A stretch of 64,000 bases of DNA from Klebsormidium nitens (Eukaryota > Plantae > Klebsormidiophyceae): NCBI GenBank assembly GCA_000708835.1, contig DF237149.1, positions 62,001 to 126,000 on the forward strand. Direction: 5' to 3'. Below, piece after piece: positions 31,352-52,416 of this stretch (positions are counted from its first letter, which is position 1; the number at the start of each line of letters is the position of its first letter). Position numbers and translations under genes: made by a program. The notes under the pieces were generated by a model. The model saw only the letters and a list, made by a program, of their open reading frames with translations. It had not been told where the DNA came from and made no database searches.

Positions 31352-33075
31352 CTAGGAGATGGCGACCGCGTCTGCGTCCATCTGTACCATCGCGTCGCCC
31401 TCCGCCTTCTCCTTCTCAATCTCGTCGGCCTCGGGCAGCTTGCGGCTCTCGTCGTCTTCCTCCCACAGCACGAAGCACGCGAGCGTGCGCGGGTCTTGCT
31501 TCTCGACAGCCAGCACGTAGGGGCGCGGGCAGCCTGGGGGCGGAACGGCGGAACGGTCAGCGAACTCAGCGGAATAACAATCGGACCCGTTATTTCCAGA
31601 GCACAAAGCACGGGAGCATGCGCGGGTCTTGTTTTTCGACAGCCAGCACGTAGGGGCGCGGGCAACCTGGGGGCGGAACAACGGAACAGGTGAGCGGAAT
31701 GTCAATGGAAGATCAGCGGAACGAGGTTGGACGCATTTATCGGACAGCAAGAAGCATGCGAGCGTGCGCGGGTCTCGTCTTCCACAGCCAGCACGTAGGG
31801 GCGCGGGCACCTTGGGGGCGGAACAGCGGAATAGAAGAGTGGAACACAGCGGAACAACAAACTGATCCGTGTTGTGAGCATGCGCAGGATTGAGATTCTT
31901 CGCAGGCAGCACGTAGGAGAAGTAATCATGCGAGCCAGAAACGACAAAGTGCGTCAGCGGAATATCAGCGGAAGGTCAGCGGAAGGAACGGTTCGGGTTC
32001 TTGCTGCAGCAATACGGGCGAAGGCAGAATTTCAATGGCCAGCGCGAGATCGCAAATAAGGTTTGACGGAAGGAGCGGAAAAGATAGACAGGTCCACGTA
32101 ATTGCCCGCATCCAGCAAATAGTGGCCGCAACCCAATTCCGCTCTCACCTTGGATGGTCCGGATGAGCGGATCGGCGCCGGACTTGAGCAGAACGCGCAC
32201 AATCCCCGACAGCTTGTTGCTGATTGCCACGTGGAGCGGCGTGAAGCCATACTGGTTGACCGCATTTACGTCGGCGCCCTTCTCGATCAGCAGCTTCACA
32301 GCATCCACGTTGCCGTTGCCCTGTGAAAGAGGCGACGTAAGCGCTTTAAAATTCAAATTGGACGGTTTAAGTTGGAAAGAAACACCTACGTCAGCGCCAT
32401 TCTTACTGACATGCCTCACGGCATCCCCTTCTGGAGGAAATGCTAAAGTTTCAACACTTCCAACATCACTCGTCAGACCCTACCCTTCCACAGCGAAGTG
32501 CAACACGAATGCCAAAAAAAATGTGGACCCCCAATCCATATGCAGACCAAATGCAGGTAACAGATTCTGAACACCTATCGCTCAGAGCAATCTCAAGACC
32601 CTAACCTACCTAGATGTGCTCTCCGGCGCCGCTCGTTCGACCATGCCTCCCGTGACAAAGCGCGACACGATTGCCACCCCATACACAGACCCTAAGCGTG
32701 ATAAAAAAGCTCAAAGAAATCCAACCCAAACTCAAAAGCGAATACAAACGCAAGACCATACCCAAAACTAAATCTCAAACCCGGATTCGAACGCAAACCC
32801 AAACCCAAAGCCAGACCCATACCCAAACCCGGATCCGAATGTAAACCCAGACCCAAACTCTGGGAACCAATTCAGATTCAACCCAAACTCTAGATTAACC
32901 CACTTGGATGTACTCTCCGGCGCTGCTCGTGAGACCCTCCCCTCCCGCAGCAAAGTGCAGCGCAGTGTCGCCCGTCTCGCTGCGGAAGTTGATGCGGGGC
33001 ATCGACCGGATAGACGCCAGGACTGGCTTCCAGGCTTCGGCGCCCTTGTCTGAGTTCGCCGCATTTCGGAAGGCA
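31352..33075 (-). CDS. Ankyrin-repeat C-terminal part of the fusion gene
   Basis: GDTALHFAA, GNVDAVKLLIEKGADVNAVNQYGFTPLHVAISNKLSGIVRVLLKSGADP, followed by an acidic tail and TAG at 31352. Confidence 0.9.
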
Positions 33076-36000
33076 CTGCAACGAAAGCCGAATGAGAGGC
33101 AGTATTTAGAGTTTGCCGGACCTTTGCGGGATTCTGGGGTTCTGGAAACCTGAATTTTCTTGTTGGGGAACGAACCAGCTGGAAAGCAGGACCGATTTCA
33201 ACGCCTCGGCGCCCTTGTCCGAATTGGCCGCATGGCGGAATGCGCTGCAAGAATGATGAACAAGAATGTGAGAACGTAAAAGTCAAGAGGTTATCAAACT
33301 TTCGCGAATTCTAGGGTATTGGGCGTTCTAGGGTTTTGGGGGCATAGCCTAATTGAGGCCGTCACAGGCTTCCGAGCCTCTCCGCCATCCCCAAATCCCC
33401 CGCGTTTTGCAAAAGGCGCTGCAAAGAGGAAAGGGCTGGGTCGGAGTCTGCCAAACTAGGGCGCAGCATGTAGACAATCTGTTTACTTTGTTATATTGAG
33501 TTTGGATGCGGGAACTATTTGAGTTGGGGGGCTCTAACTTTTTGAGGGCACAGACCAAGCGGAACCCAACACACGCTTCCAATGCTCGGGGCCGTTTCCC
33601 GACTTGGCTGCATTGCAGAAAGCGCGTACAGCCGAAGATCCGTCATCGCGGACCACCCCAGCTTCGGTGCTCGCGTCCAACTGCCGCGGCCGAGGGTTCA
33701 CACTAAAGGCTTAGCGTCTCTTCAAAACCAAGGATGCCCTCCAATACAGTAGAATCCGACTTAGGGTTCACGGATAGAGAAACCGTTGGAATTCGTGCTT
33801 GCGGATAGTGTTCACGGATAGAGAAACCGGTGGAATTCGTGCTTGCGGATAGTGTTGACAAATTTCATGAATTTTGATAAGACTGAGACCGGAAGGCCAA
33901 AACAAAGAACTTTAATCTACAAGTTGGCCCACCTGAGCAGCGCCGAGTGCAAGAGCCAGCCGGCTACGACCTTATCATAAACCTGAGTCGGTTTGCCTAA
34001 AACTTCGGCCAGTATCAACATCGCCCACCTGAGCAGTACAGATTGACACAAGCAAAAGTTCAAGCCCGTAGAACCACAAGTGTGTCAGGATGACCGCCCA
34101 CCTGAGCAGCGCTGAGTGCGAGAGCCACCCAGAGATGGCCCATGGCGTTGACACGAAACTGCTTCGTTCTTAAGGATTGTAAAACCCCAAAAACGATGGT
34201 CCCAAAAATGCCCACCAGATTGACACAGTTAGAAGTTCTGCCCCTGAAAGGAGTATAGTGTCAGGATGACCGCCCACCTGAGCAGCGCTGAGGGCGAGAG
34301 CCAGCCGGAGATGGCCATAGTGTTGACACAAAACAAGATTAAATCGGTTATCAAAACCTCGCTGTCAACAATGAGTGATACCGGCAGACTTCCGTGTCCT
34401 TCGAAAGATTTATAATTGAAGTAGTGTGATATCGACAGCCCACCTGAGCAGCGCTGAGGGCGAGAGCCAGCCGGAGATGGCCATGGCGTTGACAGAGAAC
34501 CCGGTTTTCAAAACCTGGCTGTCAATAATGAGTGATACCGGCAGACTTCCGTGTCCTTGAAAAGATTTATCTCTAACTAAAGTAGTGTCATCTTGACAGC
34601 CCACCTGAGCAGCGCCGAGTGCGAGAGCCAGCCGGAGATGGCCATGGCGTGCGCGAGCGCCTTGACCTTGACACTAATTTGGACTTTGCTTTACCCCCGG
34701 TGTCAAAACCGGCCACCAGATTGGCACTGGCAGACGTTTGTGCCCTGAAAATGGATGTGGTGTCAAGATAACCGCCCACCTGAGCAGCGCCGAATGCGAG
34801 AGCCAGCCGGAGATGGCCATGGCGTGCGCGAGCGCCTTGACCTTGAGGCGCCAGCGTTCTTTCCCGGTGACGCTAGACTTGACCTCCGCGAGAGTTGGGG
34901 CGGAAGGAAGCTTGGTGGCTTCCGTAGTCGCTTCGTCCGCAAAGCGCACGATGTCCTCGATGAGCGTCATGGCACCTACGCCGATCTTGCCTGAACAACG
35001 AGAAGTTTGCCTTCCGTAAGATTGGCTGGAAAAGAGGTAGTGAAACCAAGAATGGTGGGAGTGAAATGGAGAAAACGGTACTCAATTTCGTCGCTTCGGT
35101 GGTCGCCTCGTCGGCAAAGCGCACAAATTCATCCACGTCCTGGATTCATTTCACGGCACCCACGCCACTCTTGCTAAACGCGAAAAACGTTGCGTTCTGT
35201 AAGATCTTCACAAGCTCGTAAGAAGGGATCGTCATAAATCGGATGGAGGATAACTAACAATTGCTGTTCTAGCTTTCAAATGATTAAGGGCCGCCAAAGC
35301 AGGCTACCGAAAATAGGTGCGCTCTGCGTGGGCCCATAATCGTGGCGCCGAGCTCCGGGACGCATTTGAGATCCGCTAGTAACCCCAACACCACCTTTCA
35401 AAGAAACGCACGGTGCTGTCATGAAGGTCGCCAATCGAGTACGACCGCAGACTAGACTCCTCATCAGTCTTGTGTCAAAAGAAGGTTGAAAGCACTTACC
35501 GTTGGAGAGGCGCGCTTTGCGCGGGCCCATGACTGTGGCGCCCAATTCCGTGAGCGTTTTGAGGTTCCGCTGGCAGACGGGGCTGTCGAACATGATGGAG
35601 TTCATGGCGGGCGCGGCGATGAACGGCTTCCTGCAGCGGAAAACGGAACAGCGGAACGCTTGTGAGCAGTGGTAAAATGGACAGTGCATGTTCGAAAAGG
35701 GCGCTCCCGTGCCCTTCTTTTGGAGGAAGCTTTCGAAAGCAGGTGAAGGATTCTGGTTCCGGTGGCAGCATTGATGACCAGACAGACGCTTGGCTAAGGA
35801 ATGCGCTGACGACCTGGATTCAGCACCGCATCACCACTCGTCACTCTTGCCAAGGCCGGAACGAAGGAAGAAAGTGAAACGAGAGAGGGCCTCCACGATT
35901 GTCCAGACCGCATGCATTTGAAGCTGGCGCGAAGTATCCGTCATGCACAAATCCAGAGCAGTGAAAAGCGTACTGGAGAAGGAACCAGGAGCGGCATCTG

Positions 36001-39000
36001 TATTCTGACGGCCGTAAGGTTAATCTAGAAACGTTGAAGGCAAAATTATAGCCATGTTGGAGAAGCAACGAAAATGAGATCGGGACGTGTGGTTCCCGAG
36101 GCGCTCACTTCTTCCACTCCCACGCGGACACGACTGACGTCAGCAGGTTGTCCCCGACGCCGTGGCAGATCTTGCCGAGCGTGTTACACGTCATCGGCGC
36201 AATGATGAGGATGTCGGCCCAGTCGCGCAGCCACAGATGCCGAGCAATCACCTGCGGAGGAAGCGGTCCTTGGGTTTGGATTTGTAAGTTTCGAAATATT
36301 CTGAGTCTTAGGGTATCAGGCTATTCAGGGCCTACTTTGCGGGCTCAGTGACGCTCTGAGGGCCATGCTATGATAAAGTGGATCCGGGCTGTGGCTTACG
36401 GAAAGCTGTTCTTGAGAGAGTGTTCCGGACTGTCCGAAAGTTTCTCGAAAAGGATGAAGAAGTATCCAGGCAATCGTAAGGGGGAATAGCGTAGCTCGAT
36501 TCAGAACAGACCTAAGACAAAGAAGGGAAGAAGAGAATCTGGTATCTATGGACAGAAGATGTTAAGTCGATGATGCACAGCTTGAGAGGAAGCTTTTTGA
36601 GCAAGTGAATCACTGTGCTTCGAGGCTTTCACATGGAGCAAGATAACTGCAACCTACGGCAGCGATAACGAGAAGAGGAAGCAAGGTGCTTGGTAGGAAC
36701 AGGGAGGAGATCGACCGAGCTACGTAAGGTAAAGGGTCCCGGGAACCACTTACCGGCATACCGAACGTGTACTCGAAGTTCCATTCATGGTGGTCTGCAA
36801 AAGAGAGATGATACTTCAGTTGTCGCACTCAATTTGAGCATCTTATTGATTGTTGGCCAGGTTTGAGGAATAAGCGTCCTCAGCGGCATTTTTAAAAAAC
36901 CTTACGCGACCTACAAATGCAGTCAGTACGACCGAGAGACTTAAAATTACTGCTGTCAAGTGACCGGGGCGATACGCACGTTGACAGTCTTCTGAGCTTC
37001 GACCATTCCTGCTCTCTCCTAATTTGGCCACGGTAGATGTCCGAAAAGATAGGCAACTCCGAGCACTCCATTCAAATCTCAAGACACATCACTGGAATGA
37101 CAGACCCCAGCGCAAAGCCGGGAAAGAGCAAAGCAAGCAAAGACGGCGAGGCCGAGCGTATTCTCACCGTAATAGATGTCGTCCTCTTTCAGTACCGATG
37201 TGAGGACCCGCATGCCATCCTGCAGAGAGGATTGTAGCCGATGTGAATATGCTGAAGCGAAGACGAACGCAATCAAGACGTGCTCAATCAGCAGGTCAAC
37301 GTCGAAATAGGTTTAACGCCGATTGCACCAAAAGCCAGCAGTTACTTCCACCCATCACGCAATAGCCCAATGCGGGAAAGCAGAATTTGAGAGGTGAAAG
37401 ATGAAAGGTGGCAACGAAGGCTTTCCCCGAACTCAAACGTATAAAACGGTAACCAACCCTGGAACTGTATCCAAAAGATCGAAGATGTGGCCAGCTGATC
37501 TCTCACGGTTCAGGTATCTACCGAGAGCCCAATCCGAGGAAAGAAGTCAATAGGAAAAAGAAACGCAGAGTCCCTGTCCTCAAATGAGATCCCCTCAGAG
37601 CACTCACCCGGAAGAAGTGCCGCGAGTTCTCGGACGGCTCCAATTTCAAATCGAATTTGCCGGTAGCAGCAACTCATCCTTACCGACCAGATAACTAAAG
37701 CCCAGTATAATTGGATGAAAAGACAAAGACAACACCACTCATACCAGAGAGATTCCCTCAGAGCACTCACCCGGAAGAAGTGCCGCGAATTCTCGGACGG
37801 CACCACTTTGACGTTGAACTTGCCGGTGGCCAGCAGTTCCTCCACGAGTGCCGGCAGCTTGTCGGCGGCCGATGACGCGGCGCTGCCGACTAGCACGTTC
37901 GCCTTGGGGCCGTCCCATGCGACGACATTCTTCGGCGGGGGGGGGCCGTCCCAGTGCCAGTGGGGCCCTTCGTGGTCGTAGTTCATCTGTTTGGGGGGGG
38001 AGCAAAAACGAAATTTCATTTAATAATAGGGTTTGAAGGACCCGCTGATGGCGTCGAACGTCGTCCATGAGTTTGATACGAAACACGCGTTCAAAAACTT
38101 TTCCGCGTTCAAAAACTCGTGACCTATTTTGAGGTAGAACACCTTTCCAGGGGTATGCTTCTGGAAACCAGACGAGAAAGAGGGCCGTCCCATGTGACAT
38201 TATTCATCGGCGGGGGGGGAGCCGTCCCAGTGCCCATCGTGGTCGTACTTCATCTGTGGGGGGTTGGCAAATGGGTTTAATGAAAAAACTTCATGGAAGG
38301 GAAAAGGAGGGGCGTCCCACGCGACGACAGTTCGGGGGGGGGGGGGGGCGTGCCAGTGCCAGTGGGGCCCCTCGTTATCGTGTTTTTGAAAACGTATAGC
38401 AAATGACTTCGGATATCTGCATTTCGGATATTGTTCGACAGAAACGATGTCCTATCTGACGATATTACTCAGGGTAGGGGGGGCCCGCGTCCCAGTGCCA
38501 GTGGGGGCCCTCGTGGTCGTGGTTCATCTGTTATCAGAGGAAAGATCTGATTCAGTACCTGCATTGGACTGTGGGGAGGGGCAATATGCTTTCTAAAACA
38601 ATGTGTCGTCCTCTTTCAGAACAAGCTTGGTGGGCGATGGTCGTCCAAATGAGTGTGGTCCTCGCAGTCGCCTCTGTTGTTCTTACAGCAGAACAAGAGT
38701 CTTCCGAGTCGGAAGAATGTAAAGAGGAAACGTGCAACTCGAAAACAAATGTAGAAGAAGAAAGCGCCGCTTTAGTGTTAAATCGGGGCCCTCTTAGTCG
38801 TCTGAGACGCTTTTCTTTGGGGGCAATTTTCCGGCGAACTCGTTTGTGAATCAAGGAGAGGGCATACCAGTCGAGGGGCCCATTTTCGCGCGAGAAGGTC
38901 AAAGGCAGCGTTAGAGGGGGCCCTTCTTGAGTACCTCAAGAGATTGGGACGCATAACCGAGCTCACTAAAAAGCACCCAGTTCATTTCAACGCCCCCATG

Positions 39001-42000
39001 TGAGCTTTTCGCCCCAGCTGTTTAAGACTTTAAATAACTACAACCCCTAAAAGTGCAATGACTTCGAAACCAGAGCACCTCCGCTTACCAAGCAACACCG
39101 CTTGTAGCCTTGGGAGGCCGCCATGTCGAGCGTGTACTCCGTAACGCAGCTGGCAATGCCCTTGTCGACCTCCTCTAGTTTCTGCGAAGTCTGTGCGCTG
39201 TAGTACATTAGGCACTTGGCCTCTGCTGACCCGTCCGGTTTGCAGATTGCCGTCGGCTTGCGAATGTACCTGTAGGCACAGTGAAAGGCATCAAGCTTTG
39301 GAATTCGGTTCGACTTGCCGATGCTCTTAAGGTGAAGGCAAGAGTTAGAACAGATTTAAAGATGGAAAGTGCGAAAGCGTTTGTGATAGCTGGTCGAAGA
39401 AGTTTGAAAGGCAATCACTTCAACTTGGTGGGACCTAAGGATAAGTAGAATCTACACACTTGTGGAGAAATCTACACTTCTGAAAGAGTATGGTGTGAGG
39501 CATTCTCCAAGGTGTCAAGCCTGGCCTGCACACGCTTTCTATTTGCAAACGTAGCGGCAGGAAGAATGCAGTTCGTGTACGAAAGCTTGAAGCTTTGTAG
39601 ACCTTCCTAAACAAACCCCACTTGTGGAGGGAACCGCCTATGAGGTGGGGGATAACTTACGAGCTGTTTGCGAGGTCGTCCGGTATGAAGTTCTCCAGGA
39701 TGTCGAAGGCGTCCAGCGTTACCTTGTCGATAGCGTATAGCTCGCCCATAACCTGGCCACTGCCCTGGCCGGGTCTGCATAAGCAGAGAGACGATGACAA
39801 AGTCAGCACAGGAGAAGAGGGATCGAGAGACTTTGGTTGCCACAGTGCATTGCTGTTCGGCTGCAAAAAGGTGTTGCTGAATTGAGGTGAAGACGCTCTG
39901 CACGAAAGGGCAAAGAATCTGCTTTTTGATGACCTAATGGCCCGTTCGTGCTGGTCAAACGGACAAGAGAACGACAACCGTTGAAGGAACCTCAGCTAGA
40001 CCATTGAAAGGTCCAAAGACCCTTGGAAAAACCTTCAAAGAAAGACAGCTGTCACAAATGCCGCAACGGGATAAGATCAAAAGGTCTTCCTTTCACGAAA
40101 AAGCAGACCGAAATAGTGTAGCACAATGACCAAGTCTGAACACCAGCACTTCCGGGGAATTCGCCTAGCGCAGGTGTCGATTCTGCCCAAAAGGAACCAA
40201 CAAAGGCAACAATTAGGGAGGGAAACCTACGCGTCCAGCAGCGTGCACGCACGGTGCAGCAGCCGGCACCCCGCGTTGGTGCAGCTGGGCAGCGTCGGCA
40301 CGACAAGTGGCAGGCTCTCCTTGGTGACACGTGGCCCCACGAAGTCGTGAAGCGCCTCCTCGAACTGTCCCCGGTTCGCGAACCCCTGCTTCAGCGTCCC
40401 GTATGTGAAAAACAAAAACGGCCGGTCGGGCTTCCCCGAGTAAACCCCGAGAGCCTCCGCCACAGCAACCGGGTCGCTCCCCTGTTCCCCGACCATATTT
40501 TCTTCGTCTTCTTCTTCCTCTTCATCGCTTGCGAGCCCGTCCACCGGCTGCACGTTAGCACCCGCCGCGGCTTTCTCGTCGTCGTCTTCCTCCTCGGGAA
40601 TGTTTACGGGAACGTCGTACCGGCCCGGGCGCTCCATGATGCTCGGCATCGGCTCCGGCGGCCGCGCGCGGACGGACTGCACCCGGGGGACTCCCCCGGG
40701 GCCTGCTCCGGAGGGATCCCCCTCGAGCCCGAGGATGGACATCACTTTGGGCGACATGCTGTCGGTCTGGGTGAGGTTCCGGGATTGGGCCCGGGAAGGA
40801 GCCCGCGGAATTCCGAGATTCCGGCGGAGGGTGGATTGCCGGCGCTCGTAAGTGGATGCGCGGCGCTCGGCGCTGTTGGCCATCTTGGCCATGTTGTACG
40901 CGGTGAGGGCGGACTCCGCGGCCTCGCACACGAAGGCGCTGCAGGGGGCGGAACGGCGGAATCAGGGGGGACCGAAGGGCGGGAAGGGCGGACATAGACC
41001 GGCAGTGACACAACAGAACGGACACGCGAACATTGCTCGCATCTCAAAGGCCATGGGGTACGTGACAGGGAAAGCTTAAAAAGGACACGAGACCATGATG
41101 AAACTCTGTTCTGGGGGGGAAGTGGATATACAGAGACACACACCGCCCGCTCGAAACCGAGTGTCCGAACTGGTCAAGCACAGGCAGCTCTTGCAAGCCA
41201 CGGCTATCCAATTGAAAACACTGATAAGATCGTAAGACGCGCGGAATAATCCGACAATGCAGAGACCAGACGTCAATTTCAGAAAGTCGTCCCATTCGCT
41301 TCTTTTCCAATCAAGCCCCAATCCAAACCGATCGAAGCTCCGGAGCTGAAGTTACATGACGAACACTTGCATCGACTACTCAAAGCTCATTCCCAACTTG
41401 GTACAGTACTCATTTGCAGCTTCCTAGCCCCGCTGAACAAAACTAGTCAAACCAGAACCGGTTGTTACTAACCTGTTCAGTCGGCTGGGCGCGGGCGCTT
41501 GGTTGGCGTTGGAAGTTTTGCTCACGACGCGGATCATGCCCCGGCCACGTCCGATGGACAAGTCGCGCTTCTTGCACGCGGCAAACAGGCGGCCAACCGC
41601 GCATCGCCAGTAGCGCGCATAGGAGCGGGGCTGGACACTTGCCAGGATAACCTCCTCCCTGGTTAGGGTTAAAAAACGGGTTTTGAATTAAATGATTTGT
41701 GATGAAGCTGAATGAGGTGGAGGATTGGGTTGGGGTGAGAAGTGGTGTGACCGAGGCTGGACATTCGCCAGGATCACTTTCTCCCCGGACCAAGTTCAAG
41801 TTTCCAATCGGGAAGAAAACTGTAGGAAAAGAGCCACTCAGCGTTGAGTGAAGCTACAGAGACTTGACAACCTACCGTGATCACTGACGGTTTTCCCGTT
41901 CATTTGAACTCCCTGTTTCTTGTTTGAGCCCTTGAACATAGGGCGAGCATTGGTGAGAAAGTTCCGAAGAAAGAAAGAAGGTTCACAATAAAGACTGAAC

Positions 42001-45000
42001 TCCCCGATCCTTCTTGTGGTTAGCTTAAGTTAGCGCATTGAGAAGGTCTCATCACTACGTAATCTTGCAAGCTCTGCAATCCTGTAAAGAGTGCATGCAG
42101 CTCGGCGGCTTACAAGAAAAGCAACATCGAAATTGTAAACACAAGCTCGCAAAGTCCAAGGTTATGAGGCCAAGAAGCGGGAAAGGAAGCTCACTTCTCC
42201 TTATCGACAGCTGCTACTAGCGCGTACTCTCCTCCCGACGCGTGGCTTGTAATGTTGACCTTTGCGCCCAGAGCAGTGTCGATGTCGAAGTTGAGAATCA
42301 CCGCTGTGTCTTGGTTCGCTACGGCGTCCTGCAGAAGCGGAGTGCGTCAGGATAACGTCAGCATTCTCCTACAAGTCAGTGAAGCCTTCCTCACAACGTT
42401 CTAGGTTGGAGTTCATCATCAACGTGGAGAACCTGAAGGGGCTTGAGTCAAAACGCCGTCCTTCAAGTGGTCCAGAAAAAGCTTGTGAGAGGACTCGCTC
42501 TGCAAGGTTCAATCAAAGCTTTCGCAAGCATTGACAGAGAAAATCAGATTTGCAATTGCGAGTACGTTGGCGTGGCAGGCTTTAGTCTCTGATCTATTTC
42601 TATCGTGATGGGGGCGCATTGTGAAACTTACCATCATACAGCGCCAGAATGTCTCAGGCAGAATCTTGTTGTCGTCCATGTGGTAAATCTCCACCTGCAA
42701 GATTGTCAAAGAACGAAAAGTTTGTTCCAGTCTCACAGTGCAGTCTTCAGGCGGGTCAGAAGGGTTTGAGTCGTCCACAACCGTTTTCAGCAAGCGCAGC
42801 CACAAAGCCAGAAAGTCCAGTGTACATGTCGGATGGTGAAAAACGTTGTCTCCGATATGTGGTCATCAGAGGACCGGTTGCAAGCACTCTCGACGCTTGG
42901 TTCAGTGACTTCGGAGAAGAACTGCTTCAAAGAATTGAAACATAGAGTACGACCCAGTGGAGCCCAAAAGGCGCACAAGAGGTGATGTTGGCATGAACTG
43001 TGTCAAATGATAGTATTGATCCACACTGACGCGGATTTCAATGATCCGCTCCGCCTCGACTAGATTTCGAAACCACAGCGCATGTGTCTAAAGCGCAAGA
43101 ACAACGACACGAGCTTGATAGCGCCAGCTTTGAAGCGGGGCGCATTCACCTTGACTGGCAGCTGCCTGGTCTGCACCACCTCGACCATGGTGTGAAAAGT
43201 GTCGGCGAGCGTCATGTTCCCGTCGGTCACGGCGCGCAGCGGCAGCTGGGCCGTGTGGAAGATATCGTCCACGCTCGTCTTCTTGCCGATCGCCGAAAGA
43301 GCATACGCTATGGCCGTCACGTTGCCGCACGCGATGGGGGCGTGCAGGGAGCGCTCGTCGACCTGGCACGTTGGAAGCAGAAAGCTTTTAAAGTCATCTC
43401 GTCACAATTCGAACTTAGCCCTGAACAAAGGCCTCTAGCATGAAACACCTTTACCATTTCAAGTTCAAGCTTTAATCACTCCTACACAAGACTCTCTTGT
43501 ACTTGAATTTAATCCCAAACGAGCTCAACGCTTCTGGCCTCTGTCGCCTCAACCTCCCACTGACTGCCAAGCAAATGACGCATGAGCTGATTAGCATGAT
43601 TCCTTTGCGAAAGGGCTTACATCTTGGGATCGTCATTCGTCTTGGCTGACAAGAAAAGCTCAAGACAAGTGTTAAGGCCACTACCTAAACGACCGTCTGC
43701 ACAGCCTTCGGACCACAGGTAACGATGTCCAGCGACGACCTTTCGGTGCAGGCAAAAACAAGCAGACCTGCAGAGCAACCATGAGCAGAAGCGAAAGCTC
43801 ACCCCAGCGATCCCCTTGTGAATGCCTGGCGGGTTCCAAACCGCCTCCTGGGGCCACGGGTTAGTGTACGGGTTATCCTTGTGGGTTATCCGGATGCACC
43901 CCCGCGACCGCTTAGAGGTAGAGTCCTTGTCCTGCGGCAGCGAGGGATATGACGTCAGCGAGGGATATGACGTCAGGCCTTGGGGTGCGCGTCGACCGGG
44001 AATCTACTTAACACCTGTGTTGCCTTTGTCGTACCGCCAAGTAGGAGGTACGGTACGGTTCAGGCCGAAATACGGCTTTAGAATGTACCTCTCTGACCAC
44101 GTGGATCTACTGGACCATTCAGTTGGCTCAAAGCTCGGGGATTCTCTGCAGCGCTTCTTTATCTGCGAATTGTTGGCAATCTGACTCATCACTTTCTATG
44201 GTCCCTGCAGTTTGCCAGGTTTGTGAATTTCCGGCCTTTGGTTCAGAAATCTGTGTTCAATGGACCTAGAAGAGGTAGAACTGGAGCCAGAGTCGAAAGC
44301 GTTAGGAGAAAGAACCATTGCCAGCGTCCAAGAAAGCGCAGTTTGTATGAGGTCTTTGAACGCGAATCGCGGACCCGGCTTCACGAACAGCCTTGGTCGA
44401 GACTCCGTACATCGCTTCGCTTCCGTGTATCACAACAGGAACGATGAGGCGCGAGAAAGACAAGTCTTATACGAGAAAAATGAGACTGAAACCAGGGATA
44501 AAGAGGGTGAAGAAAGTGACTACACCTGCATCGCTCGGAACATGCGGTTCGGCGTGCACCGCCAGTATCGCAGGTACTTCTTGGGGTTGACGTCAGCAAT
44601 GACGAGGTGGCCGTCCGTGTCCCATCCTCCCAGGAGCGCGAAGTGCCCACCGCCGATCGCGACTCCCTCCTGGATTCCGTGCGCGATGTTGACGTTGAAG
44701 TTGAGGAGGTACATTTCGACGTCCTTGGAGGACGCCGCCCGGCGCAGGCTGACCTCAGCAACCTGTCAGCACGAGAAAGGTCTGACGTCAGANNNNNNNN
44801 NNNNNNNNNNNNNNNNNNNNNNNNNNNNNNNNNNNNNNNNNNNNNNNNNNNNNNNNNNNNNNNNNNNNNNNNNNNNNNNNNNNNNNNNNNNNNNNNNNNN
44901 NNNNNNNNNNNNNNNNNNNNNNNNNNNNNNNNNNNNNNNNNNNNNNNNNNNNNNNNNNNNNNNNNNNNNNNNNNNNNNNNNNNNNNNNNNNNNNNNNNNN

Positions 45001-48000
45001 NNNNNNTGAGGAGGGAATGACGTCAGCTTCATGCAGTGATAAGAAGTCGTCATCAAAGCCGAGGTCGAAAGCAGAAGTGTTGGTTAAGCATAGAAGGAAT
45101 GAAGTAGGATTGGAGGGAAGGGGGACGAACAAGGAAAGCAAAGAAGAAACACCTGAGCCCACCTGTTCTGCGAAGTCCTGTTCGCTCAGGCGTCCCTCGT
45201 CGAAGAAGAAGAGCTCCACTCGGAAGGGTAGGTTCCGCCCCTCGACGTATCTACAGGCCACTTGGAACGTGTCTGCCAACGTCAGCCCCGCGTCGATGAT
45301 CATCTGGGCGGGAAGGTCCGCATAGTGGAACACGTCCTCTACAGTTGTTGGGACGCTCAGAGCGGCAATTGCAAACGCGATAGCTGCATAACAGGTAGAG
45401 GATTCGAATGGGTCAGACTAATTCAGCAGAAAAAAGCAGGATTGTTGCGATGTCACGGCAGCAGCCTGATTGAGCTTTCCTAAACAGTCGTGGAAATGGC
45501 GTACCCTGGCAGGATTTGTTTTTTTTGGGAAAGAGACGAGCCTAGAGTTATTCGACCAAAAGCACGCCTCTCCGGTAAGTGGCACGCTCACGTAAGCCGT
45601 CAGAACGAGAGGACGGGCAAGTCACCCCAGATCTTGAAGGGCGTCTGCGAATCTAGACGGAAAGTCTTCCCGCTTTCTTGCTGCGTCATTCCATTTGCTT
45701 GGCGAGCCTGACCGGCCACAACGGCACCAAACATCAATCAGGACCCACGCCCACGTTCGTTTCACCGGTCACTTTTGGTTGGTAAAGCCTTGTCGGCACT
45801 CGGGAATGGAGAAAATGACTTCCTCTTTCTGGAACCTTTCTCCGGCTATCACCCCTTCCCTCGATGGTTATTGCCATGAGCAGCTTCCAGCCGTCGGTCG
45901 ACGGGGCGATAGCCAAGGCGGGGTCGAATTTTGGCGACGGAAGGCCATGCTTCTGAGCCTCGGGCTCTGTCAGTTTGGGACACTTGAAGGAAGCTGTGAC
46001 CCAAAGCGGCGGAAGCGTCTCACCTGTGATGTTACAGCAATTGAGCGGCTGCTGGAACTCGTACAAGTGGACCATGTCGAGCGCTTGCCGCCGCCCGCTG
46101 TGCTCGAACGCCTGCCCCGACAACGTGGTTCCGCCACGTGTGATGAACGACGCCTGCGGAAGGTAGGTTTGTACCATCTGATATCTATGAGCAGTCGACG
46201 GCTCCTAGGAATTGATTGGTGCAAGGAGGGTGTGTACCAGATGGCAGTCAACGAGCAAATCGACGGCTCCTAGGAGACGAGTGGTAACAGTAGGATTGCG
46301 ACAGCGGCAGTCACTGTGCAGTCGTTGCGACAGACGGCAGTCACTGTGCAATCCACGGCATTTAAGAGATGGTGAAACGGTCAAACCTGAACTCGACTCC
46401 AAAGCCTGCTACCATTCGCCAAGCCCCTCTTGAGAATGATCCTTGCTCAAAGACCGCTTACCAACACAGGCACAACTGACGTGTTACATTACGTCAATCT
46501 GCTAACGAAAGATGGACTTCACAGACCTTTCTGAAAGGGGCTTGGCCATCCAGCGCAACCGAACAATCTGCAGAAGTATTCCTTCAAAGCTGTCAGAGAT
46601 GTCCAGTCCTCAAGTAAGGCATGGACTACGGTTCCTCAAACCTTTGCCTGAATGGTTTTGCGAACTTGCCTGCGACTTGCCCTCCGCCCAACTGGCCTGT
46701 CCCCCGCTTGGCAACGCCACCGGCAGAGGCCCAGGGACGTCGGCTCCCTCCGTGCTTCGACGGGAGGACTGGGTGATGAGCTGGCTGAAGGGGTCTCCAT
46801 CGGAAGATTGAGGGGGGGTGAGGGGGCCGCTGTCCAAAGGTCGGAGTGAGGGGGAGACGGTGGGGACGGGAGAGCCGTCGAGGGAGCGACGGGAGGAAAG
46901 CGAAGAGGGGGTCTGCAAGTAAGGAGGGGTTGAGTCTTCAGCCGTCCAATCAATGACAGGAGAAACTTCAGAGGGTCCTGAATCACACAAATTCTGCTTT
47001 TGCTTTCTTGCATTCAACGCAACGCCTGGCGGAGTCTTTGAGAAACCGACGAATCGTGCGATAAGGCTCCGTGCTCGTCACTAACAAGGTCCAAACGCGG
47101 TCTGCTGCAAGCAATGGCACCACGGCTGATGTGGGGACTGTCTCAGGCACTGAACACCCCAGGAGCTTCAGAAAAGTGCAAACTATTAATTGCACGCTGC
47201 GGTGCTTGCCAAACCAGCACGTGGCAACCGCACGGTTGACGCCCACTATTCGCACGCCTAAACATTTTGGACAGACTCCTGTCAGGCAGCCACGTGGCAT
47301 TCTCAGGAGGAGAGAGTGGCACACCGCATTGTAGGTCATGTACTTGTCGGCGTTGGGGGTGAAGCGGTACAGCGAGTCCGTGTTTTTGAACGACTGGTTC
47401 TTGTTCACGTGCTGGATAAGCTGCAACAGGACTCAGAAACTTAGAACAGCGTTCGCTGAACCACTTGTACAAACCATCATTTGAAACATTATCTGTAATC
47501 TGTAAGCCCCATAAGGTTGAGATTATGGGGCGCAGTCTCTTTGCGCTGCTGCGACACCAAGCAAAGAAAAGCAAGCCAAAACAGAAAGTCTGGCTCATCA
47601 TTTATCAACACGGGAGGACTTCAGGGGCTTCTCGGAGTAACAAAGTGTGCCAACTTCTCTCCCATGATCAACATTTCCGAAAATGGATCAAACCCAAATA
47701 TCCTTGAAAAACAAACTTCAACATGGAGTTGCCACCAGTGTAGGTGCAGCCCCAACCTGCGCCCTCCTGGACGTTCCCAGCTCATGAAAAACCAAACACT
47801 CTTCTTTGTCAGGTCTGAAATTACCAGCCTGTTCTCCGATTACTTCCTCTGGCAAGAATTCGCCCCCAGTCACAAAGCCGCCAGCCACATGGTATCAGCA
47901 CTGTCAGCGATTGAAAGGAACCCTTAACATACATGGAAAAACCCTAGATACCCATAGGTCTTTATGAGCCAAATGCGCCATCTCAAGCTCGCTAGCTCTT

Positions 48001-50957
48001 GTTGTCCCGACAACATATTCTTTCGCCTTGATCTAAGAACCATGCCCAAACCTTGATTCTATCCTGGAAGGCGTTAAGCTAAGCAGATCCCCCAGCTTTG
48101 AAGAGCCCCTTTCAAACCTGACCGCCACCTCTGTCAACACCGCCAGTATGGCGAACTAATGCCTTTTCCCTACAGCACACGACCTCAACGACCTAAGACT
48201 TGCAACGCCGCTTCTTCAACAAGGTTAAGCTAAACTCTCACCTCCTCCTGCATTAGCGCGTTCCCAATCGCAACTGCCCACTCCTCCGACGTTGCCAGCC
48301 CCGTTGTAAGAAGCACCTTGACTGCAGCCACCCCCTCAAAGCAGTCCTTGTACTTGCGCAGGTTCACCGTGCGATCCTTGATCACAAGGCCCTGTCTTAG
48401 GGCGCTAACCACGTTCGTAAGGTCTTCTTCTTCAAGCACCATCTCCCTGGGTGACGACTCGTTTATTGAGGCTTGGGGCCTGGAAAACGATAGAACCTGG
48501 GGCTTTCATTCTGAGGCTTTCATTTTGGGGCCTTGGTGGAAAACACGACTTTGGTGTGGGGCTTGAATTAGATTAGTAAGAGGTTGGCATGAGCAAGAGT
48601 TATGCAGATCCCACGTTGGTCCCATAGGTTTGAGGACACCGCAGCTGCAAAGTGCAATCCAAATTTTGGCCCCTCATAGAGCTGAAGCTTTGACTGATGA
48701 TGTAGAACGTTGTCAAAGACTTGCAGAGTTTGAATCAACTTCTGAGCATCCCAATCGGGCTCTCAGAGGTACAGCTAAGCACCACCACCACGAATGGATG
48801 AACAAGCTGCACTCCCCACAAAGCATGGCTGTTACTGTTGTCCGCTGGTCTGCGCTAAAAGAAGGAACCTACGAGCAAAAGTGCCTGGAAAGGGGTCGCA
48901 ACCAGTCAGTTAGGAAAGGGACTGATACTATAAGGATGCCTTGTCGCACATGTTCGAACTGGAGAGTCTGGGGGCACTACTTGGATCACACAAGCGGCCA
49001 AAATTTTATGGAATTTGGCAACGACTTAAACCTGAAGAGTGGAGGAGACAAACGCTTGCAGAAATAGAATGTGACTCAGTTGTGCGGACGCAAGCGAAAG
49101 TATGATTCCTTACAGCAAAGAGGAGGAGAACGTGTACAGCGCACTCGTAGAGTTCTTAAAGCCGGGGGAGCCTGGGGAGCTGTCAACCGCCTGTTTGATG
49201 ACTCCTGCCTGCAGGGGGCACAAGACAAAGTGGTTGGTTCCGAGAGTCTCCTGCAAGCTAGCGAGCTTTGCGCTTGCAGCCGGCATTGGGTGCAAATGAC
49301 TCTATTGACCGGATCCCTGGAGCTCTTTCGCTGACTGAGGTGCAAGCCAAGCCCAGGATTGGGCAACACTGTCAGAAGTAAAGCGTTAGAGACCCGACAC
49401 AAAGATCAAGACTTGAGGTTCTGTGACACAATCCTTGTGCTGGCCAAAGGTGTGCGAACAAACTTAAGGTTTTATCATGCATTTGCCTTGGCTGGTACAA
49501 TGCTTCTGCCTTGAAAAATGACATAGGAGTGCCCCGGAACTCCCTCAGACCTTGTCATGCATTAGCGGTGGCGCCTGGTTTATGTCTCAGCTTTGCAGAG
49601 TTGCGGATGAAAGTTGTCCACTTCGAAAACTGATATGAAGCTCATAAAGCTTCGTGCATTTGAGCAACAACACAACACTTTTGCAAGTCTTGCTGCAAAC
49701 CAGCAAATATTCTGAAGCAATCATTGGGAGAGGGGAACAATTGCTTACAAGAAGCAGCGAGGATTCTGTAACTCCAACAGATTTGTATGTATACACGAGA
49801 GTAAGGGGTACATATGGAGCAATGCTGTCAGTGATATCACAAGTTCCTTGCCCAGTTTGCTGATGCTGCGCTACGAAAGATTGATCAAGCTGAGTGTACT
49901 CAGTCGAACTCATTTTGAGCTCAACAACTGTCCTCAGCACTGACTGGCTCCTCTGCCAGGACGCTGACAGCTTGAACACTCTCAAGGGGGAGGCTCAGAA
50001 AGAAAGATGCACAAAGTTCGAGCTTGCTCCAGAGAAACGTTCAGCTGAGTGGTCTCATCATGGTGCGGCATTGCGTCGGGCTCCCAAAAAGTCCGCGAGT
50101 TGCATTTCAAACGAATGTTTGTTGAAATAAGGGCCAAACTTTCATTGGCTTAACTTTCACATAGGCCCAGAGTCGTTGATTGTAAGTTTTGTGTAAAGCA
50201 AAGCCATCTTGCCATATAGCTGCAGTATATATGACATTTGAGTGGGCAAAACGGAAGCGCCAGGTGCCTCACTCTGGAAGCAGTTTTTTCACCTTGGCTC
50301 CATGCTTCCTTGCGCTTTCACTTTATCCGCCCAAACTTCAGCCATAAATTCAGGCAAGTTAGGGATTTGCCCCTCCCCTCCATCAAAGAGCTGTGCTGTG
50401 AATGTTCAAGCAGCCACTTGCTGGTCATCTGACTAACAGTCGGACAAATAGACGTTGGCACAATCATCGGCACAATAAGCACCACCTCTTGTTGAAGAAG
50501 ATGCAGCGCTTACACAAAGCACGGTGCAATCTAAAAGCAGAGTGGATTCAAACCAAAGGTTTCAAAACAACACCGAGACACCCTATAGCCACGATACACG
50601 ATCTTCAAGGCAAATGTCAAGGAAATATGAGAAGGTACTCACATCAAGCATCTTGCCACCCCAGCTCACCACATAAACCAGAACGTTTTTGCATCAACTC
50701 TTGGTAAACAGAGGCTTTTGGAAAAACCATAGAACAAGCGGAGTGACGAAACTCACCGCAAGCAACTGCTGCCCCAATTCCACCGCGGACACATCATGTG
50801 GCGCCAGCCCCTCATCTAAAAAGAACTCCACCGCCTCTGTTCCCTGAAATGTCTGCTTATACATCCGGAACCCCACCCGGCGATCCTTCTTTGGCACGCC
50901 CTGAAAGAGCTTCTCGGCAATTGCCGAGAGCTCGCCGGAGCCCAAACGGCGATGCAT
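31352..50957 (-). CDS. Multidomain fusion protein, about 1502 aa, 25 exons: DEP-DEP / PCS-like (peptidase C83) / degenerate PCS-like / GGACT(GGCT)-like / HFCD flavoprotein (PPCDC/HAL3-like) / ankyrin repeats
   Basis: Exons 50957-50757, 49208-49114, 48479-48242, 47420-47325, 46912-46670, 46153-46024, 45383-45163, 44762-44526, 43931-43803, 43362-43150, 42694-42632, 42328-42195, 41658-41473, 40938-40231, 39774-39661, 39269-39089, 37986-37771, 37219-37168, 36794-36754, 36251-36109, 35630-35500, 34990-34780, 33075-32904, 32320-32149, 31533-31352. Total 4509 nt; every junction is phase-consistent with no internal stop. A possible upstream in-frame exon is 51970-51865. Confidence 0.8.
31540..31960. 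repeat. Intronic copies of the acceptor and start of the last exon (31533) of the fusion gene
   Basis: cagccagcacgtaggggcgcgggca…ggggcggaac recurs at about 31640 and 31785, with a fading copy at about 31905. Confidence 0.85.
32700..32900. repeat. Degenerate 6-mer (aaaccc/aaccca/gaccca) intronic low-complexity repeat
   Basis: gcaaacccaaacccaaagccagacccatacccaaacccggatccg…. Confidence 0.6.
33768..33856. repeat. Tandem duplication of about 44 bp (two copies)
   Basis: ttcacggatagagaaaccgttggaattcgtgcttgcggatagtg repeated directly with one mismatch. Confidence 0.85.
33920..34780. repeat. Array of six degenerate copies of the donor end of exon 34990-34780
   Basis: cccacctgagcagcgc…gagagccagccggagatggccat occurs at about 33928, 34024, 34097, 34273, 34439 and 34600. 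The copy nearest the exon is the longest. Confidence 0.9.
34950..37910 (-). CDS. HFCD flavoprotein domain (phosphopantothenoylcysteine decarboxylase/HAL3/LanD-like)
   Basis: KANVLVGSAASSAADKL, YDHHEW, RHLWLRDWADILIIAPMTCNTLGKICHGVGDNLLTSVVSAW, KPFIAAPAMN, RLSNGKIGVGAM. Confidence 0.9.
37950..40430 (-). CDS. Gamma-glutamylcyclotransferase-like domain (GGACT/YtfP/AIG2-like subgroup)
   Basis: LFFTYGTLKQGFANR, LPLVVP, LLDAPGQGSGQVMGELYAIDKVTLDAFDILE (catalytic Glu position), SYIRKP, KCLMYY. Confidence 0.85.
38200..38545. repeat. Three degenerate copies of the acceptor and start of exon 37986-37771
   Basis: gtcccagtgccagtgggggccctcgtggtcgt…ttcatctg recurs at about 38220, 38350 and 38490. Confidence 0.85.
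41473..43362 (-). CDS. Second, degenerate phytochelatin-synthase-like domain
   Basis: Colinear with domain 1: LHAPIACGNVTAIAYAL, TSVDDIFHTAQLP, NMTLADTF, VILNFDI, SGGEYALVAAVD, VILASVQPRSYARYWRC, RDLSIGRGRGMIRV. Confidence 0.78.
43803..46153 (-). CDS. Phytochelatin-synthase-like (papain-fold peptidase C83) domain 1, catalytic residues retained
   Basis: FQQPLNCCNITAI (Gln…Cys spacing of 6, as in PCS Q-x5-C), GLTLAD, GGGHFALLGGWD (His), LVIADVNPKKYLRYW (Asp), MQDKDSTSKRSRG. Confidence 0.8.
44793..45006. other. Assembly gap (214 N) inside an intron of the fusion gene
   Basis: Run of N. The flanking exons join in phase without it. Confidence 0.99.
47325..50957 (-). CDS. Tandem DEP domains (N-terminal part of the fusion gene)
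   Basis: KDRRVGFRMYKQTFQGTEAVEFFL…AVELGQQLLAAGVIKQA…FKNSTSALYTF and KDRTVNLRKYKDCFEGVAAVKVLL…AVAIGNALMQEELIQHV…FKNTDSLYRF. Both match the DEP consensus. Confidence 0.88.
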
Positions 50958-52416
50958 TGTTCCTGTTCAGAATTAATTCCTGACGTCCAGTCACTGAATG
51001 TTGTAAAAGTCCGTTGCAGAAAATGTACGGCAAGTTCTGGGACTGGGGACTGGTGACTCTTTCCAAGGTAGGAGCTTGGCAAAGCAACTGGTGCTAGTGG
51101 TGGGCGATGAATTTCTCACAAAGGCTCTCTAGCAGCTGTTGAGTTTTGAGATATTTGGAGGTATCACAGCGGCTCATGGAGCGTAGACACCAATCAAAGA
51201 ACTTTGCGTGGAGAATTTAAGGAAGTCAGGCACTATCCTCTGCCTCTCAATGGCAATCCAGATGTTTGCAGATCACTGAAAGCAGTTGCAATTGATTGCC
51301 TTCCTTTACTTCTGCTTTTTGCTACCACCGGACAACGGTCTCTCTCTATGAAAGTTTATGAAGACACCGTAGCTTCGAAAGGTGTCACAGAGATCTAGCA
51401 CACAATGAAGACGAAAGTAACCTTGAATCCGAGAGCTCTGCGGCTCAGCACAAAATTCAACGAAGGAACCAGCTTATGGGGTCCTTGCCCCGAGCTCGCA
51501 CTTTGGTGTTCAGTCATTAGGGGGCGCAGAGCCGTACAGGGGGGAAGATTCAAACTCAAGAATCCGACGGAGCCTGAGGTGAAGACTCGAGAGTTGTTTC
51601 TGAAAGTTTTCCTTCGAGTTCAATCAATGGTGTCCTTGCATCACCGATTTACCGGGTCCCGGTATACCTAGGTATACGGGAGGTATACCGTATCTTCGCA
51701 GCGTGCCTCGGAAGGAAAACCCTAGAGGCTAGGCCGGTATTCGGTAAAAGGCTGTAAGGATTTCAGCAACTGAGCAGTTTATGGTGTCACACAGTGTCAC
51801 AGCGCCGGGCGCCGGGCACGCAGAGCGCACACTTGCATTGAGGGAAGGCTGCACAGTTACTTACCGGTAGGTATTGCACTAGTGCAGCAGGCAGGAGTCT
51901 CCGGCGCCCGCGCGGCGCGGAGCTTATGCGCACCACTGCACTGGCCAGTCAAGCGGTACCCCGGTACCATTGCGTGCCCTGAAAAGCAGTGCGCATTGAA
52001 AACGTGCACCAGACGCACCTGCACGCAGCGTGGATAGCGCTGACTTCGATCAACCAATAATATACGGTACCTGTTTGGAATTCAATTTGTATATTCTTCC
52101 CCTTGACGTGGTTGTGGTTACCGGACGTAACCGGAGATTACAAAAGCGAAGTGTGATGGGTGCCTCCCGTAACGGAGTGTTCAGGACCGAGCTTGGAACT
52201 TCACAGCTACGCTGCGGCCTGCCAATCAAATAGGTTAAACAGGTAGTCGTTTGTTAGTGGGCGTTACAACTATTACAGCGACAAATTTGACACACATTCT
52301 TCAAAACAATGTCTACGGCAATGCTACGGCATTCAATGATCAGCCGCACTTACTCCAGGGCTGGTTCTCTCTAATCATCAGCGTCAAGTTCTCCCAAGGA
52401 AGATTGGACTCCGATA

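Follow-up and report, generated by a model that had tools for sequence, protein, structure and literature searches.

A single expressed 25-exon gene of Klebsormidium nitens joins DEP, phytochelatin synthase-like, GGACT-like, flavoprotein and ankyrin modules in one open reading frame

The minus strand between positions 31352 and 50957 of a 64,000-nucleotide stretch of the Klebsormidium nitens genome (contig DF237149.1, positions 62,001 to 126,000; hereafter the window, whose numbering we use) holds a single expressed and conserved protein-coding gene of 25 exons. Its spliced open reading frame (ORF) of 4509 nt runs from an ATG at 50957 to a stop at 31352 and encodes 1502 amino acids (aa), with a predicted protein mass of about 164 kDa and an mRNA of at least 5.7 kb. 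The module order proposed by a first-pass annotation of this DNA is supported: two DEP domains, a domain resembling phytochelatin synthase (PCS), a degenerate second copy of that domain, a GGACT-like module, an HFCD flavoprotein module and ankyrin repeats. Taken whole, the explanation that this is one gene with the listed modules, for which a function on thiol peptides is inferred, has in our estimate a probability of roughly 80%.

The gene model was rebuilt from RNA and from two-species alignments, and this independent evidence returns the same 25 exons, 4509 nt, 1502 aa and single ORF that had been claimed from the letters alone. Donor sites are GT in 23 of the 24 introns and GCAAGT in intron 5 (GC-AG), and acceptors are CAG in all 24. 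The GC content of third codon positions is approximately 0.71 in the coding pieces, compared with approximately 0.5 overall. The first-pass annotation had also argued from the uninterrupted reading frame. The frame is indeed open, but a spliced frame that stays open across 20 kb is no evidence alone, because permissive chaining also yields an open chain of 32 exons; the model is validated by RNA and conservation instead. The 32-exon chain, which came from an unconstrained script, was dropped once the two-species alignment showed several of its exons to be false. An Rfam scan of the window returned no RNA family.

The RNA evidence consists of contigs from four runs (X5, X9, X11 and X12) of four studies, placed on 37771–43770. 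Between 26 and 33% of the words of 37900–43880 are present in RNA runs of the same organism, which is the share expected of its exons. Each of the four runs provides one long spliced contig identical to the genome (3410, 3810, 3956 and 5706 nt). Seven joints are read in the RNA (37986/39089, 39266/39658, 39774/40231, 40938/41473, 41657/42194, 42327/42631 and 42691/43147), and all seven read CT..AC on the plus strand, hence GT..AG in the direction of the gene. In all four contigs the loose end at 43363 continues into the exon whose end is at 43803. The four junctions that the first-pass annotation had singled out for RNA mapping are all canonical GT..AG. The junction 43803/43362 is spliced in the contigs of the four runs; 41473/40938 (PCS2 to GGACT) and 39089/37986 (GGACT to HFCD) are seen directly in the same four; and 34780/33075 (HFCD to ankyrin) is supported indirectly, by the arithmetic of the contig ends and by conservation. 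The ATG at 37986, at which transcripts might have started independently, lies within the assembled transcripts as an internal codon; neither a loose end nor a second contig is reported there.

The ends of the RNA contigs extend this picture on both sides. We predicted them with a model of Logan contigs at k = 31, in which a contig at diverging paths ends after the bases that the paths share, and at merging paths extends beyond the junction by k-1 less the number of shared bases. One base before the exon 10 acceptor is common to spliced and unspliced sequence, and the reported upstream remainders are for this reason one short. The upstream end of X5 and X9, at 1390 nt, equals exons 2–9 (1389 nt) plus one shared base at the exon 1/2 acceptor, and that of X11, at 990 nt, equals exons 5–9 (960 nt) plus 30 (k-1 into exon 4). 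Downstream, the end of X9 and X11 at 605 nt equals exons 18–22 (578 nt) plus 27, with CAG shared before the acceptor at 33075; the end of X5 at 751 nt equals exons 18–23 (750 nt) plus one shared G after the donor at 32904. The X12 contig of 5706 nt is accounted for by a leader of 586, the 4509 nt of the ORF and a trailer of 611. The chance that four distinct ends would all fall at predicted positions is approximately 1e-8 (the predicted positions number about 2 x 9 in the 2176 nt on the upstream side and 2 x 8 in the 1715 nt on the downstream side). Because the contig ends match the predictions to the base, junctions 1/2, 4/5, 22/23 and 23/24 are confirmed, together with the summed exon lengths between them. 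An alternative origin of the 605-nt end at a duplicated acceptor at 33244 was rejected, as the copies differ from the first base and a merge of paths fits exactly.

Every RNA data set that we examined shows expression of the gene. All sampled words of 50757–51600, which cover exon 1 together with the 643 nt that precede it, are present in approximately 20 RNA runs. At least 643 nt upstream of the ATG (50958–51600) are thus found in RNA, as either a long 5' untranslated region or an overlap with an upstream transcript.

Conservation was assessed against one related species, represented by a merged 36.5-kb Joint Genome Institute (JGI) metagenome contig that was located through the genomic ORFs P0029 and P0001. 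This contig aligns with the window at exons only, in short collinear blocks of 70–90% identity and in the same order, and no introns align. Common CAG acceptors and GT donors stand at every block edge. All splice phases are kept. The orthologous ORF in the relative has approximately 1478 aa, with the same first residues and the same stop. Both species have the ATG, preceded by an in-frame stop 9 nt upstream in the window and 42 nt upstream in the relative; similarity between the two species ends upstream of the start and decays after the conserved stop. The alignment also corrected individual exons: each DEP domain is split over two exons, exon 5 is 46912–46670 with a GCAAGT donor, exon 6 ends directly after the CCNIT motif, and exon 18 is 37219–37168. 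The relative lacks intron 5 (46669–46154) and has exons 5 and 6 joined directly in frame; since the frame is kept without the intron, the exon 5/6 join is independently confirmed. Exon 14 of the relative (window 40938–40231) is interrupted by approximately 1.1 kb, an intron or an insertion, for which several open solutions exist; the one with the best splice sites gives the 1478 aa. Searches with single exons against proteins found only unspliced genomic ORFs of the relative and no transcript-derived or annotated protein, and a metagenome scan with exon 17 found nothing.

Every part of the protein is under purifying selection in frame, with ratios of nonsynonymous to synonymous substitution rates (dN/dS) between window and relative all below 0.35 (0.045–0.34) at a dS of approximately 0.7–1.4. 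The lowest values belong to PCS1 (0.045), to the GGACT module, the HFCD module and the HFCD–ankyrin link (0.05 each) and to PCS2 (0.06). They are followed by DEP1 (0.10), the ankyrin module with its tail (0.13), DEP2 (0.22) and the linkers (0.28–0.34). The link of 55 aa between HFCD and ankyrin is 95% identical between the two species. At the same place, exon 23 codes from the first codon on and has no conserved ATG (the Met of the window is Ala in the relative). Exon 22, if left unspliced, meets a stop after one codon in the relative and reads on for 34 codons in the window, so that no stop is conserved.

A run of N at 44793–45006 lies inside intron 7 (45162–44763), 30 nt upstream of the exon 8 acceptor. 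The phases of exons 7 and 8 match, the profile of the PCS family crosses their join without a missing part, and the relative has an ordinary intron at this site. No exon is hidden in the gap, because exons 2–9 add up to 1389 nt, exactly the length seen in the RNA contig; the assembly gap removes no coding sequence.

The N-terminus of the protein carries DEP1 (aa 20–95) and DEP2 (aa 128–205). Exon 1 (50757–50957, aa 1–67) holds the conserved start and the N-terminal two thirds of DEP1. The remainder of DEP1 is in exon 2 (49114–49208, aa 68–99), a conserved block with common CAG and GTAAG sites at which the contigs of X5 and X9 end. DEP2 is divided between exon 3 (48242–48479, aa 99–178, with conserved splice sites) for its N-terminal part and exon 4 (47325–47420, aa 179–210), which has 88% nucleotide identity with the relative and contains the X11 contig end, for its C-terminal part. 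Taken alone, exon 1 matches Pfam DEP (PF00610) with 34.5 bits and exon 3 with 36.1 bits, both above the cut-off of 32.7. The Ser/Pro-rich linker that follows (aa 211–315) is the first of two long low-complexity linkers; exon 5 (46670–46912, aa 211–291, donor CAG|GCAAGT) codes for most of it. The second linker (aa 724–900) is acidic and separates PCS2 from the GGACT module.

PCS1 (aa 317–508) is a PCS-like domain of the papain fold, and PCS2 (aa 537–723), which directly follows it, is a paralogous copy. Exon 6 (46024–46153, aa 292–335, with conserved splice sites) contains the start of PCS1 and the putative nucleophile Cys331 (codon 46036–46034). Exon 7 (45163–45383, aa 335–408) provides the core, exon 8 (44526–44762, aa 409–487) His448 and Asp465, and exon 9 (43803–43931, aa 488–530) the end of the domain; it is into the 3' end of this last exon that the loose end of the four RNA contigs reads. 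PCS2 begins in exon 10 (43150–43362, aa 531–601, a piece of the RNA contigs) and continues through exon 11 (42632–42694, aa 602–622, with RNA joints on both sides in four runs) and exon 12 (42195–42328, aa 623–667, RNA joints). It ends in exon 13 (41473–41658, aa 667–729), which the four runs join to exon 14.

Single PCS exons score 14 bits, below the Pfam PF05023 cut-off, and the assignment comes from their relatives. Exon 7 has 28 relatives among 1.84 billion representative proteins. Twenty of these were scanned with Pfam, and 14 match PF05023 at E <= 0.001, 12 of them above the 24.9-bit cut-off. A profile of the 16 closest relatives matches the Nostoc enzyme alr0975 (PDB code 2BTW) with an E of 2.5e-11, with GGH and DV aligned; this profile reaches 223 bits for PCS1 and 152 for PCS2. 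Exon-level matches of PCS1 and GGACT to PDB entries (designed Kelch and PPR proteins; queries 40233–40472 and 44526–44762) were discarded as artefacts: their whole-sequence E-values look highly significant but are sums of many weak repeat matches. The relatives of exon 7 (P0003–P0028) form a very small PCS-like family with the motif QQP(I/L)NCC, which occurs in varied multi-domain proteins. One of them, P0015, combines the PCS-like domain with EF-hands and a glyoxalase/VOC domain, again glutathione-linked chemistry.

The catalytic triad is intact in PCS1, with Cys331, His448 and Asp465 at invariant columns. In the QQP(I/L)NCC motif, Cys331 occupies the Cys column that is invariant across the family, and His448 and Asp465 align to the GGHIS and MDVS of alr0975 (2BTW). 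The corresponding columns of PCS2 hold Gly543 (beside a Cys in a variable column; exon 10), Glu656 (Asp in the relative; exon 12) and Ser674 (exon 13). Judged by these residues, PCS2 is a conserved pseudo-enzyme, because Gly, Glu and Ser replace Cys, His and Asp, in agreement with the pseudo-PCS proposed earlier. The designation of PCS1 as a phytochelatin synthase holds in part: a peptidase C83-like domain with its triad is present, but it belongs to a small and divergent family and lacks the Cys-rich C-terminal domain of the plant enzyme. No exon piece gave a Pfam match to that metal-sensing domain of eukaryotic PCS. Like the Nostoc enzyme (NsPCS, alr0975; 2BTW/2BU3), PCS1 comprises the catalytic domain only, with Cys, His and Asp at the aligned columns; unlike it, it is part of a tandem duplication with a dead second copy and is embedded in a protein of 1502 aa. 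The Nostoc 'half-size' PCS enzyme removes glycine from glutathione, and plant PCS also deglycylates glutathione conjugates (GS-conjugates).

The GGACT/AIG2-like module (approximately aa 900–1063) is the weakest and least secure of the module assignments. Exon 14 (40231–40938, aa 729–965, RNA from four runs) codes for the acidic linker and then for the probable N-terminal part of the module, with YGTLK (Tyr908). Exon 15 (39661–39774, aa 965–1003, RNA joints) supplies the middle with the candidate catalytic Glu992, and exon 16 (39089–39269, aa 1003–1063) the C-terminal part, joined in the RNA of four runs to exon 17. Two Pfam PF06094 matches are collinear and each is below the cut-off of 22.8 bits: 13.3 bits for exon 14 (profile 1–25) and 17.7 bits for exon 15 (profile 50–74). 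In a language-model search with exon 14, 85 of 100 look-alike clusters of the Atlas carry PF06094, with a top score of 0.95. Exon 15 also gives a weak match to Escherichia coli YtfP (1XHS; E 0.48), and Glu992 is a candidate that was placed by eye, in a segment aligned to YtfP residues 46–70. The GGACT claimed in the first-pass annotation is therefore backed by two collinear partial matches and the look-alike search, but each exon falls below the cut-off and the case is weaker than had been stated. Standalone members of the GGACT family are proteins of 120–160 aa. The module resembles this family (human 3JUC and YtfP) in having YGTLK at its N-terminus and a candidate Glu in the expected segment, and differs from it by a Cys-rich insert after the first strand region. 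GGACT acts on gamma-glutamylamines with a catalytic Glu in a YGSL-type fold, and enzymes of this type prefer such amines to gamma-glutamyl amino acids (PMC7022552). YGTLK and the candidate Glu992 are compatible with this definition of motif and catalytic residue.

The HFCD module extends over approximately aa 1090–1300. Exon 17 (37771–37986, aa 1064–1135), cis-spliced to exon 16, codes for a Pro-rich link and the N-terminus of the module with its putative strand for flavin mononucleotide (FMN) binding. Exon 18 (37168–37219, aa 1136–1153; a conserved block with common CAG and GTGAGA sites) and exon 19 (36754–36794, aa 1153–1166; a conserved block) follow, and both are required for the 578-nt sum. 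Exon 20 (36109–36251, aa 1167–1214) contains His1171, and exon 21 (35500–35630, aa 1214–1258) contains PAMNSIMF (Asn1224, Met1227) and Asn1257. Exon 22 (34780–34990, aa 1258–1328), whose donor is conserved in phase 2 and downstream of which the contigs of X9 and X11 end, holds the C-terminus of the module and the conserved link to the ankyrin repeats. The Pfam Flavoprotein family (PF02441) matches exon 20 with 41.2 bits (cut-off 22.7) and exon 17 with 18.1 bits (profile 2–43), collinearly. The best solved relatives of exon 20 are Arabidopsis AtHAL3a (1MVL, 51 bits) and human phosphopantothenoylcysteine decarboxylase (PPCDC, 47 bits).

Alignment with AtHAL3a places His1171 at His90 and PAMNSIMF at PAMNTLMW, with the last residue changed from W to F. 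At Cys175 the module has Asn1257 (RLSNG compared with RLA-C175-G; AtHAL3a residues 133–174 aligned), and Asn is found in the relative too. FMN-dependent oxidative decarboxylation depends on His90, Asn142 and Met145, and reduction to the thiol product depends on Cys175 (PMC9604783). As in AtHAL3a and human PPCDC, the FMN fold, His90 and PAMNxxM are kept in the module; unlike these, it has Asn for Cys175 and is fused to other enzymes. The second, reductive half-reaction of PPCDC should fail because Cys175 is Asn, and the module is on this alignment not classed as a canonical PPCDC, because the replacement is found in both species. A fusion of HFCD is known from bacterial CoaBC, in which it is joined to the phosphopantothenoylcysteine synthetase. 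LanD enzymes (EpiD, MrsD), also of the HFCD family, oxidatively decarboxylate the C-terminal Cys of peptides to give an ene-thiol product. The alignment predicts that our module should likewise perform the first half-reaction only. Like LanD enzymes it has the His and the Asn and no reducing Cys; unlike them it occurs in a eukaryote without lanthipeptide context, and EpiD and MrsD score 21–24 bits versus 51 bits for AtHAL3a. A third likeness is to fungal Hal3/Vhs3, in which an HFCD domain with the His and without the catalytic Cys is part of a larger protein with acidic regions; yeast Hal3 and Vhs3 have no PPCDC activity alone, need a partner subunit and moonlight as regulators (PMC9604783). 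In contrast to them, the module keeps an intact PxMNxxM-type motif, absent from Hal3/Vhs3, and no Ppz-type partner is implied.

The C-terminal ankyrin module begins with exon 23 (32904–33075, aa 1328–1385), where conservation starts at the acceptor and the X5 contig ends. Exon 24 (32149–32320, aa 1386–1443, conserved splice sites) contains ankyrin repeats above the Pfam gathering score (PF00023/PF12796, 57 bits), and exon 25 (31352–31533, aa 1443–1502 and the conserved stop) a last ankyrin-like repeat and an acidic tail, for approximately three repeats in total.

Every domain family in this protein is known, and no description of their combination in one protein was found. Not one of the 20 Pfam-scanned relatives of exon 7 carries DEP, GGACT, Flavoprotein or Ank, and full-text literature searches found no paper on such a protein, which supports the earlier statement that no described protein with this architecture is known. 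These searches returned no relevant paper on phytochelatin synthase with DEP, dinoflagellate or Klebsormidium, nor on PPCDC with GGACT, nor on PCS in connection with GGCT, fusion and cysteamine. In the literature searched, no pathway linking PCS, HFCD and GGACT is described, and gamma-glutamyl-cysteamine appears as a synthetic prodrug for cystinosis only. The architecture is present in at least two related genomes, and no relative with it was found outside this lineage.

Natural enzyme gene fusions usually mark consecutive steps of one pathway. Here the fusion unites three families that act on gamma-glutamyl-cysteine chemistry: a PCS-type deglycylase, a cysteine-decarboxylating flavoprotein and a gamma-glutamyl-amine cyclotransferase. 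It therefore provides a concrete and testable hypothesis for a new thiol route. We lean slightly towards the view that the protein catalyses consecutive steps on gamma-glutamyl-cysteine peptides derived from glutathione. In the channelled route that we propose, PCS1 would remove Gly from glutathione to leave gamma-Glu-Cys, as the Nostoc half-size enzyme does. The HFCD module would then oxidatively decarboxylate the free C-terminal Cys of gamma-Glu-Cys, an N-acyl-cysteine like phosphopantothenoyl-cysteine; without Cys175 the reaction would probably halt at the enethiol unless another reductant acts. GGACT would split the gamma-glutamyl-amine product, releasing 5-oxoproline and leaving a C2 aminothiol, either cysteamine or its ene-thiol. 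The HFCD step is placed before GGACT because only decarboxylation would turn a gamma-glutamyl amino acid into a substrate of the GGACT type. This exact order of PCS1, HFCD and GGACT on glutathione is a tentative proposal that we regard as rather unlikely to be correct in full. Less likely still is a self-contained route from glutathione to glycine, CO2, 5-oxoproline and a free C2 aminothiol that would be independent of coenzyme A and pantetheine.

The remaining modules can be given roles in the same scheme. PCS2 probably takes the part that a second protomer plays in the PCS dimer. Domains of the HFCD family form trimers whose active sites lie at the interfaces, and trimerisation of this module would bring three chains together. 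The DEP domains and the ankyrin repeats would localise or regulate the complex; recruitment to membranes is suggested by DEP alone. The scaffolded machine for processing thiol peptides that the first-pass annotation had pictured is likewise a hypothesis.

These readings have to be weighed against others, which begin with the gene itself. Four or five neighbouring genes on the same strand (DEP-PCS, GGACT, HFCD and ankyrin) might have been chained by a permissive search. Open chains are cheap, as the 32-exon chain with its false exons illustrates, exon 17 starts exactly with an ATG, exon 14 has in-frame Met codons, and a contig spanning two genes would not prove a single transcript. We nevertheless consider such a chimera extremely improbable, given that the joins between modules are canonical in-frame splices in four of four RNA runs, with no loose end or alternative contig at 37986. 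The HFCD-to-ankyrin and exon 1/2 joins match contig ends to the base, the ankyrin exon is without a conserved start and the HFCD exon without a conserved stop, and the linkers are under in-frame purifying selection. It is also improbable, if less so, that the single ORF does not make one working polypeptide, with the linkers cleaved as in a polyprotein or isoforms made from internal starts, and the fusion serving co-expression. The two long low-complexity linkers (aa 211–315 and 724–900) would suit cleavage, and the contig breaks at junctions point to the presence, at some level, of unspliced or other forms. Against this, the linkers are conserved in frame (dN/dS ~0.3), the HFCD–ankyrin link of 55 aa, at 95% identity, is not linker-like, and 37771–43770 yields no alternative spliced contigs.

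Other alternatives accept the protein and read its chemistry differently. PCS1 and GGACT alone might degrade glutathione or its conjugates to Cys or Cys conjugates, by taking off first Gly and then gamma-Glu as 5-oxoproline. The HFCD module would in that case be a non-catalytic trimerisation or regulatory module, or would need a canonical PPCDC subunit to work. This reading, which we find unlikely and still the most serious of the four, draws on the established deglycylation of GS-conjugates by plant PCS. It also draws on the change of Cys175 to Asn in both species, and on the precedent of the Cys-less Hal3/Vhs3, which are inactive alone and moonlight as regulators (PMC9604783). It is opposed by the retention of the equivalents of His90, Asn142 and Met145, all three of them, by an HFCD dN/dS of 0.05, and by the preference of GGACT for gamma-glutamyl amines (PMC7022552), which would be supplied only by decarboxylation. 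That the module is instead the organism's own PPC decarboxylase of the coenzyme A pathway, housed in a larger signalling protein and unrelated to any PCS or GGACT function, would suit the best solved relatives of exon 20 (AtHAL3a at 51 bits and human PPCDC at 47 bits). The Cys needed to complete that reaction is missing in both species (PMC9604783), and we regard this reading as very improbable. For the proposal of consecutive steps on gamma-glutamyl-cysteine peptides, several points count on the other side. Activity, substrate, cofactor binding and localisation are all putative; an HFCD module lacking Cys175 may be non-catalytic alone or need a partner, as Hal3/Vhs3 do (PMC9604783); a free ene-thiol product would be unstable; and GGACT stays below the Pfam cut-off on each exon. 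The architecture appears in two related genomes only, with no broad co-occurrence signal. For the gene model, short-read contigs give local continuity only, with no molecule read end to end, and the junctions outside 37771–43770 are taken from arithmetic and conservation.

If the self-contained route from glutathione is true, compounds of the cysteamine type would be made independently of coenzyme A and pantetheine. The fusion also provides a eukaryotic HFCD that is predicted to carry out chemistry of the lantibiotic type. The tandem of an active and a dead PCS is natural material for the study of pseudo-enzyme partners.

Partial copies of neighbouring exon ends lie in the introns of the gene: from exon 17 both the 5' and the 3' part are copied, from exon 22 the 3' end, and from exon 23 the 5' part. 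The copies are located at 38530–38473, 38381–38313, 38269–38182, 37667–37597, 35126–35102, 34671–34599, 34489–34438, 34318–34272, 34148–34096 and 33247–33201, and those of the exon 22 3' end sit inside a 161-nt tandem array at 34256–34650. The assembled RNA makes use of none of the exon-end copies. In the relative it is the 5' end of exon 14 with its acceptor that is present as four or five tandem copies (approximately 13630–14189 of the merged contig, L005+L004+L001). The pattern looks like repeated local duplication of exon–intron boundaries. A second run of N, at 59296–59694 of the window, lies outside the gene.

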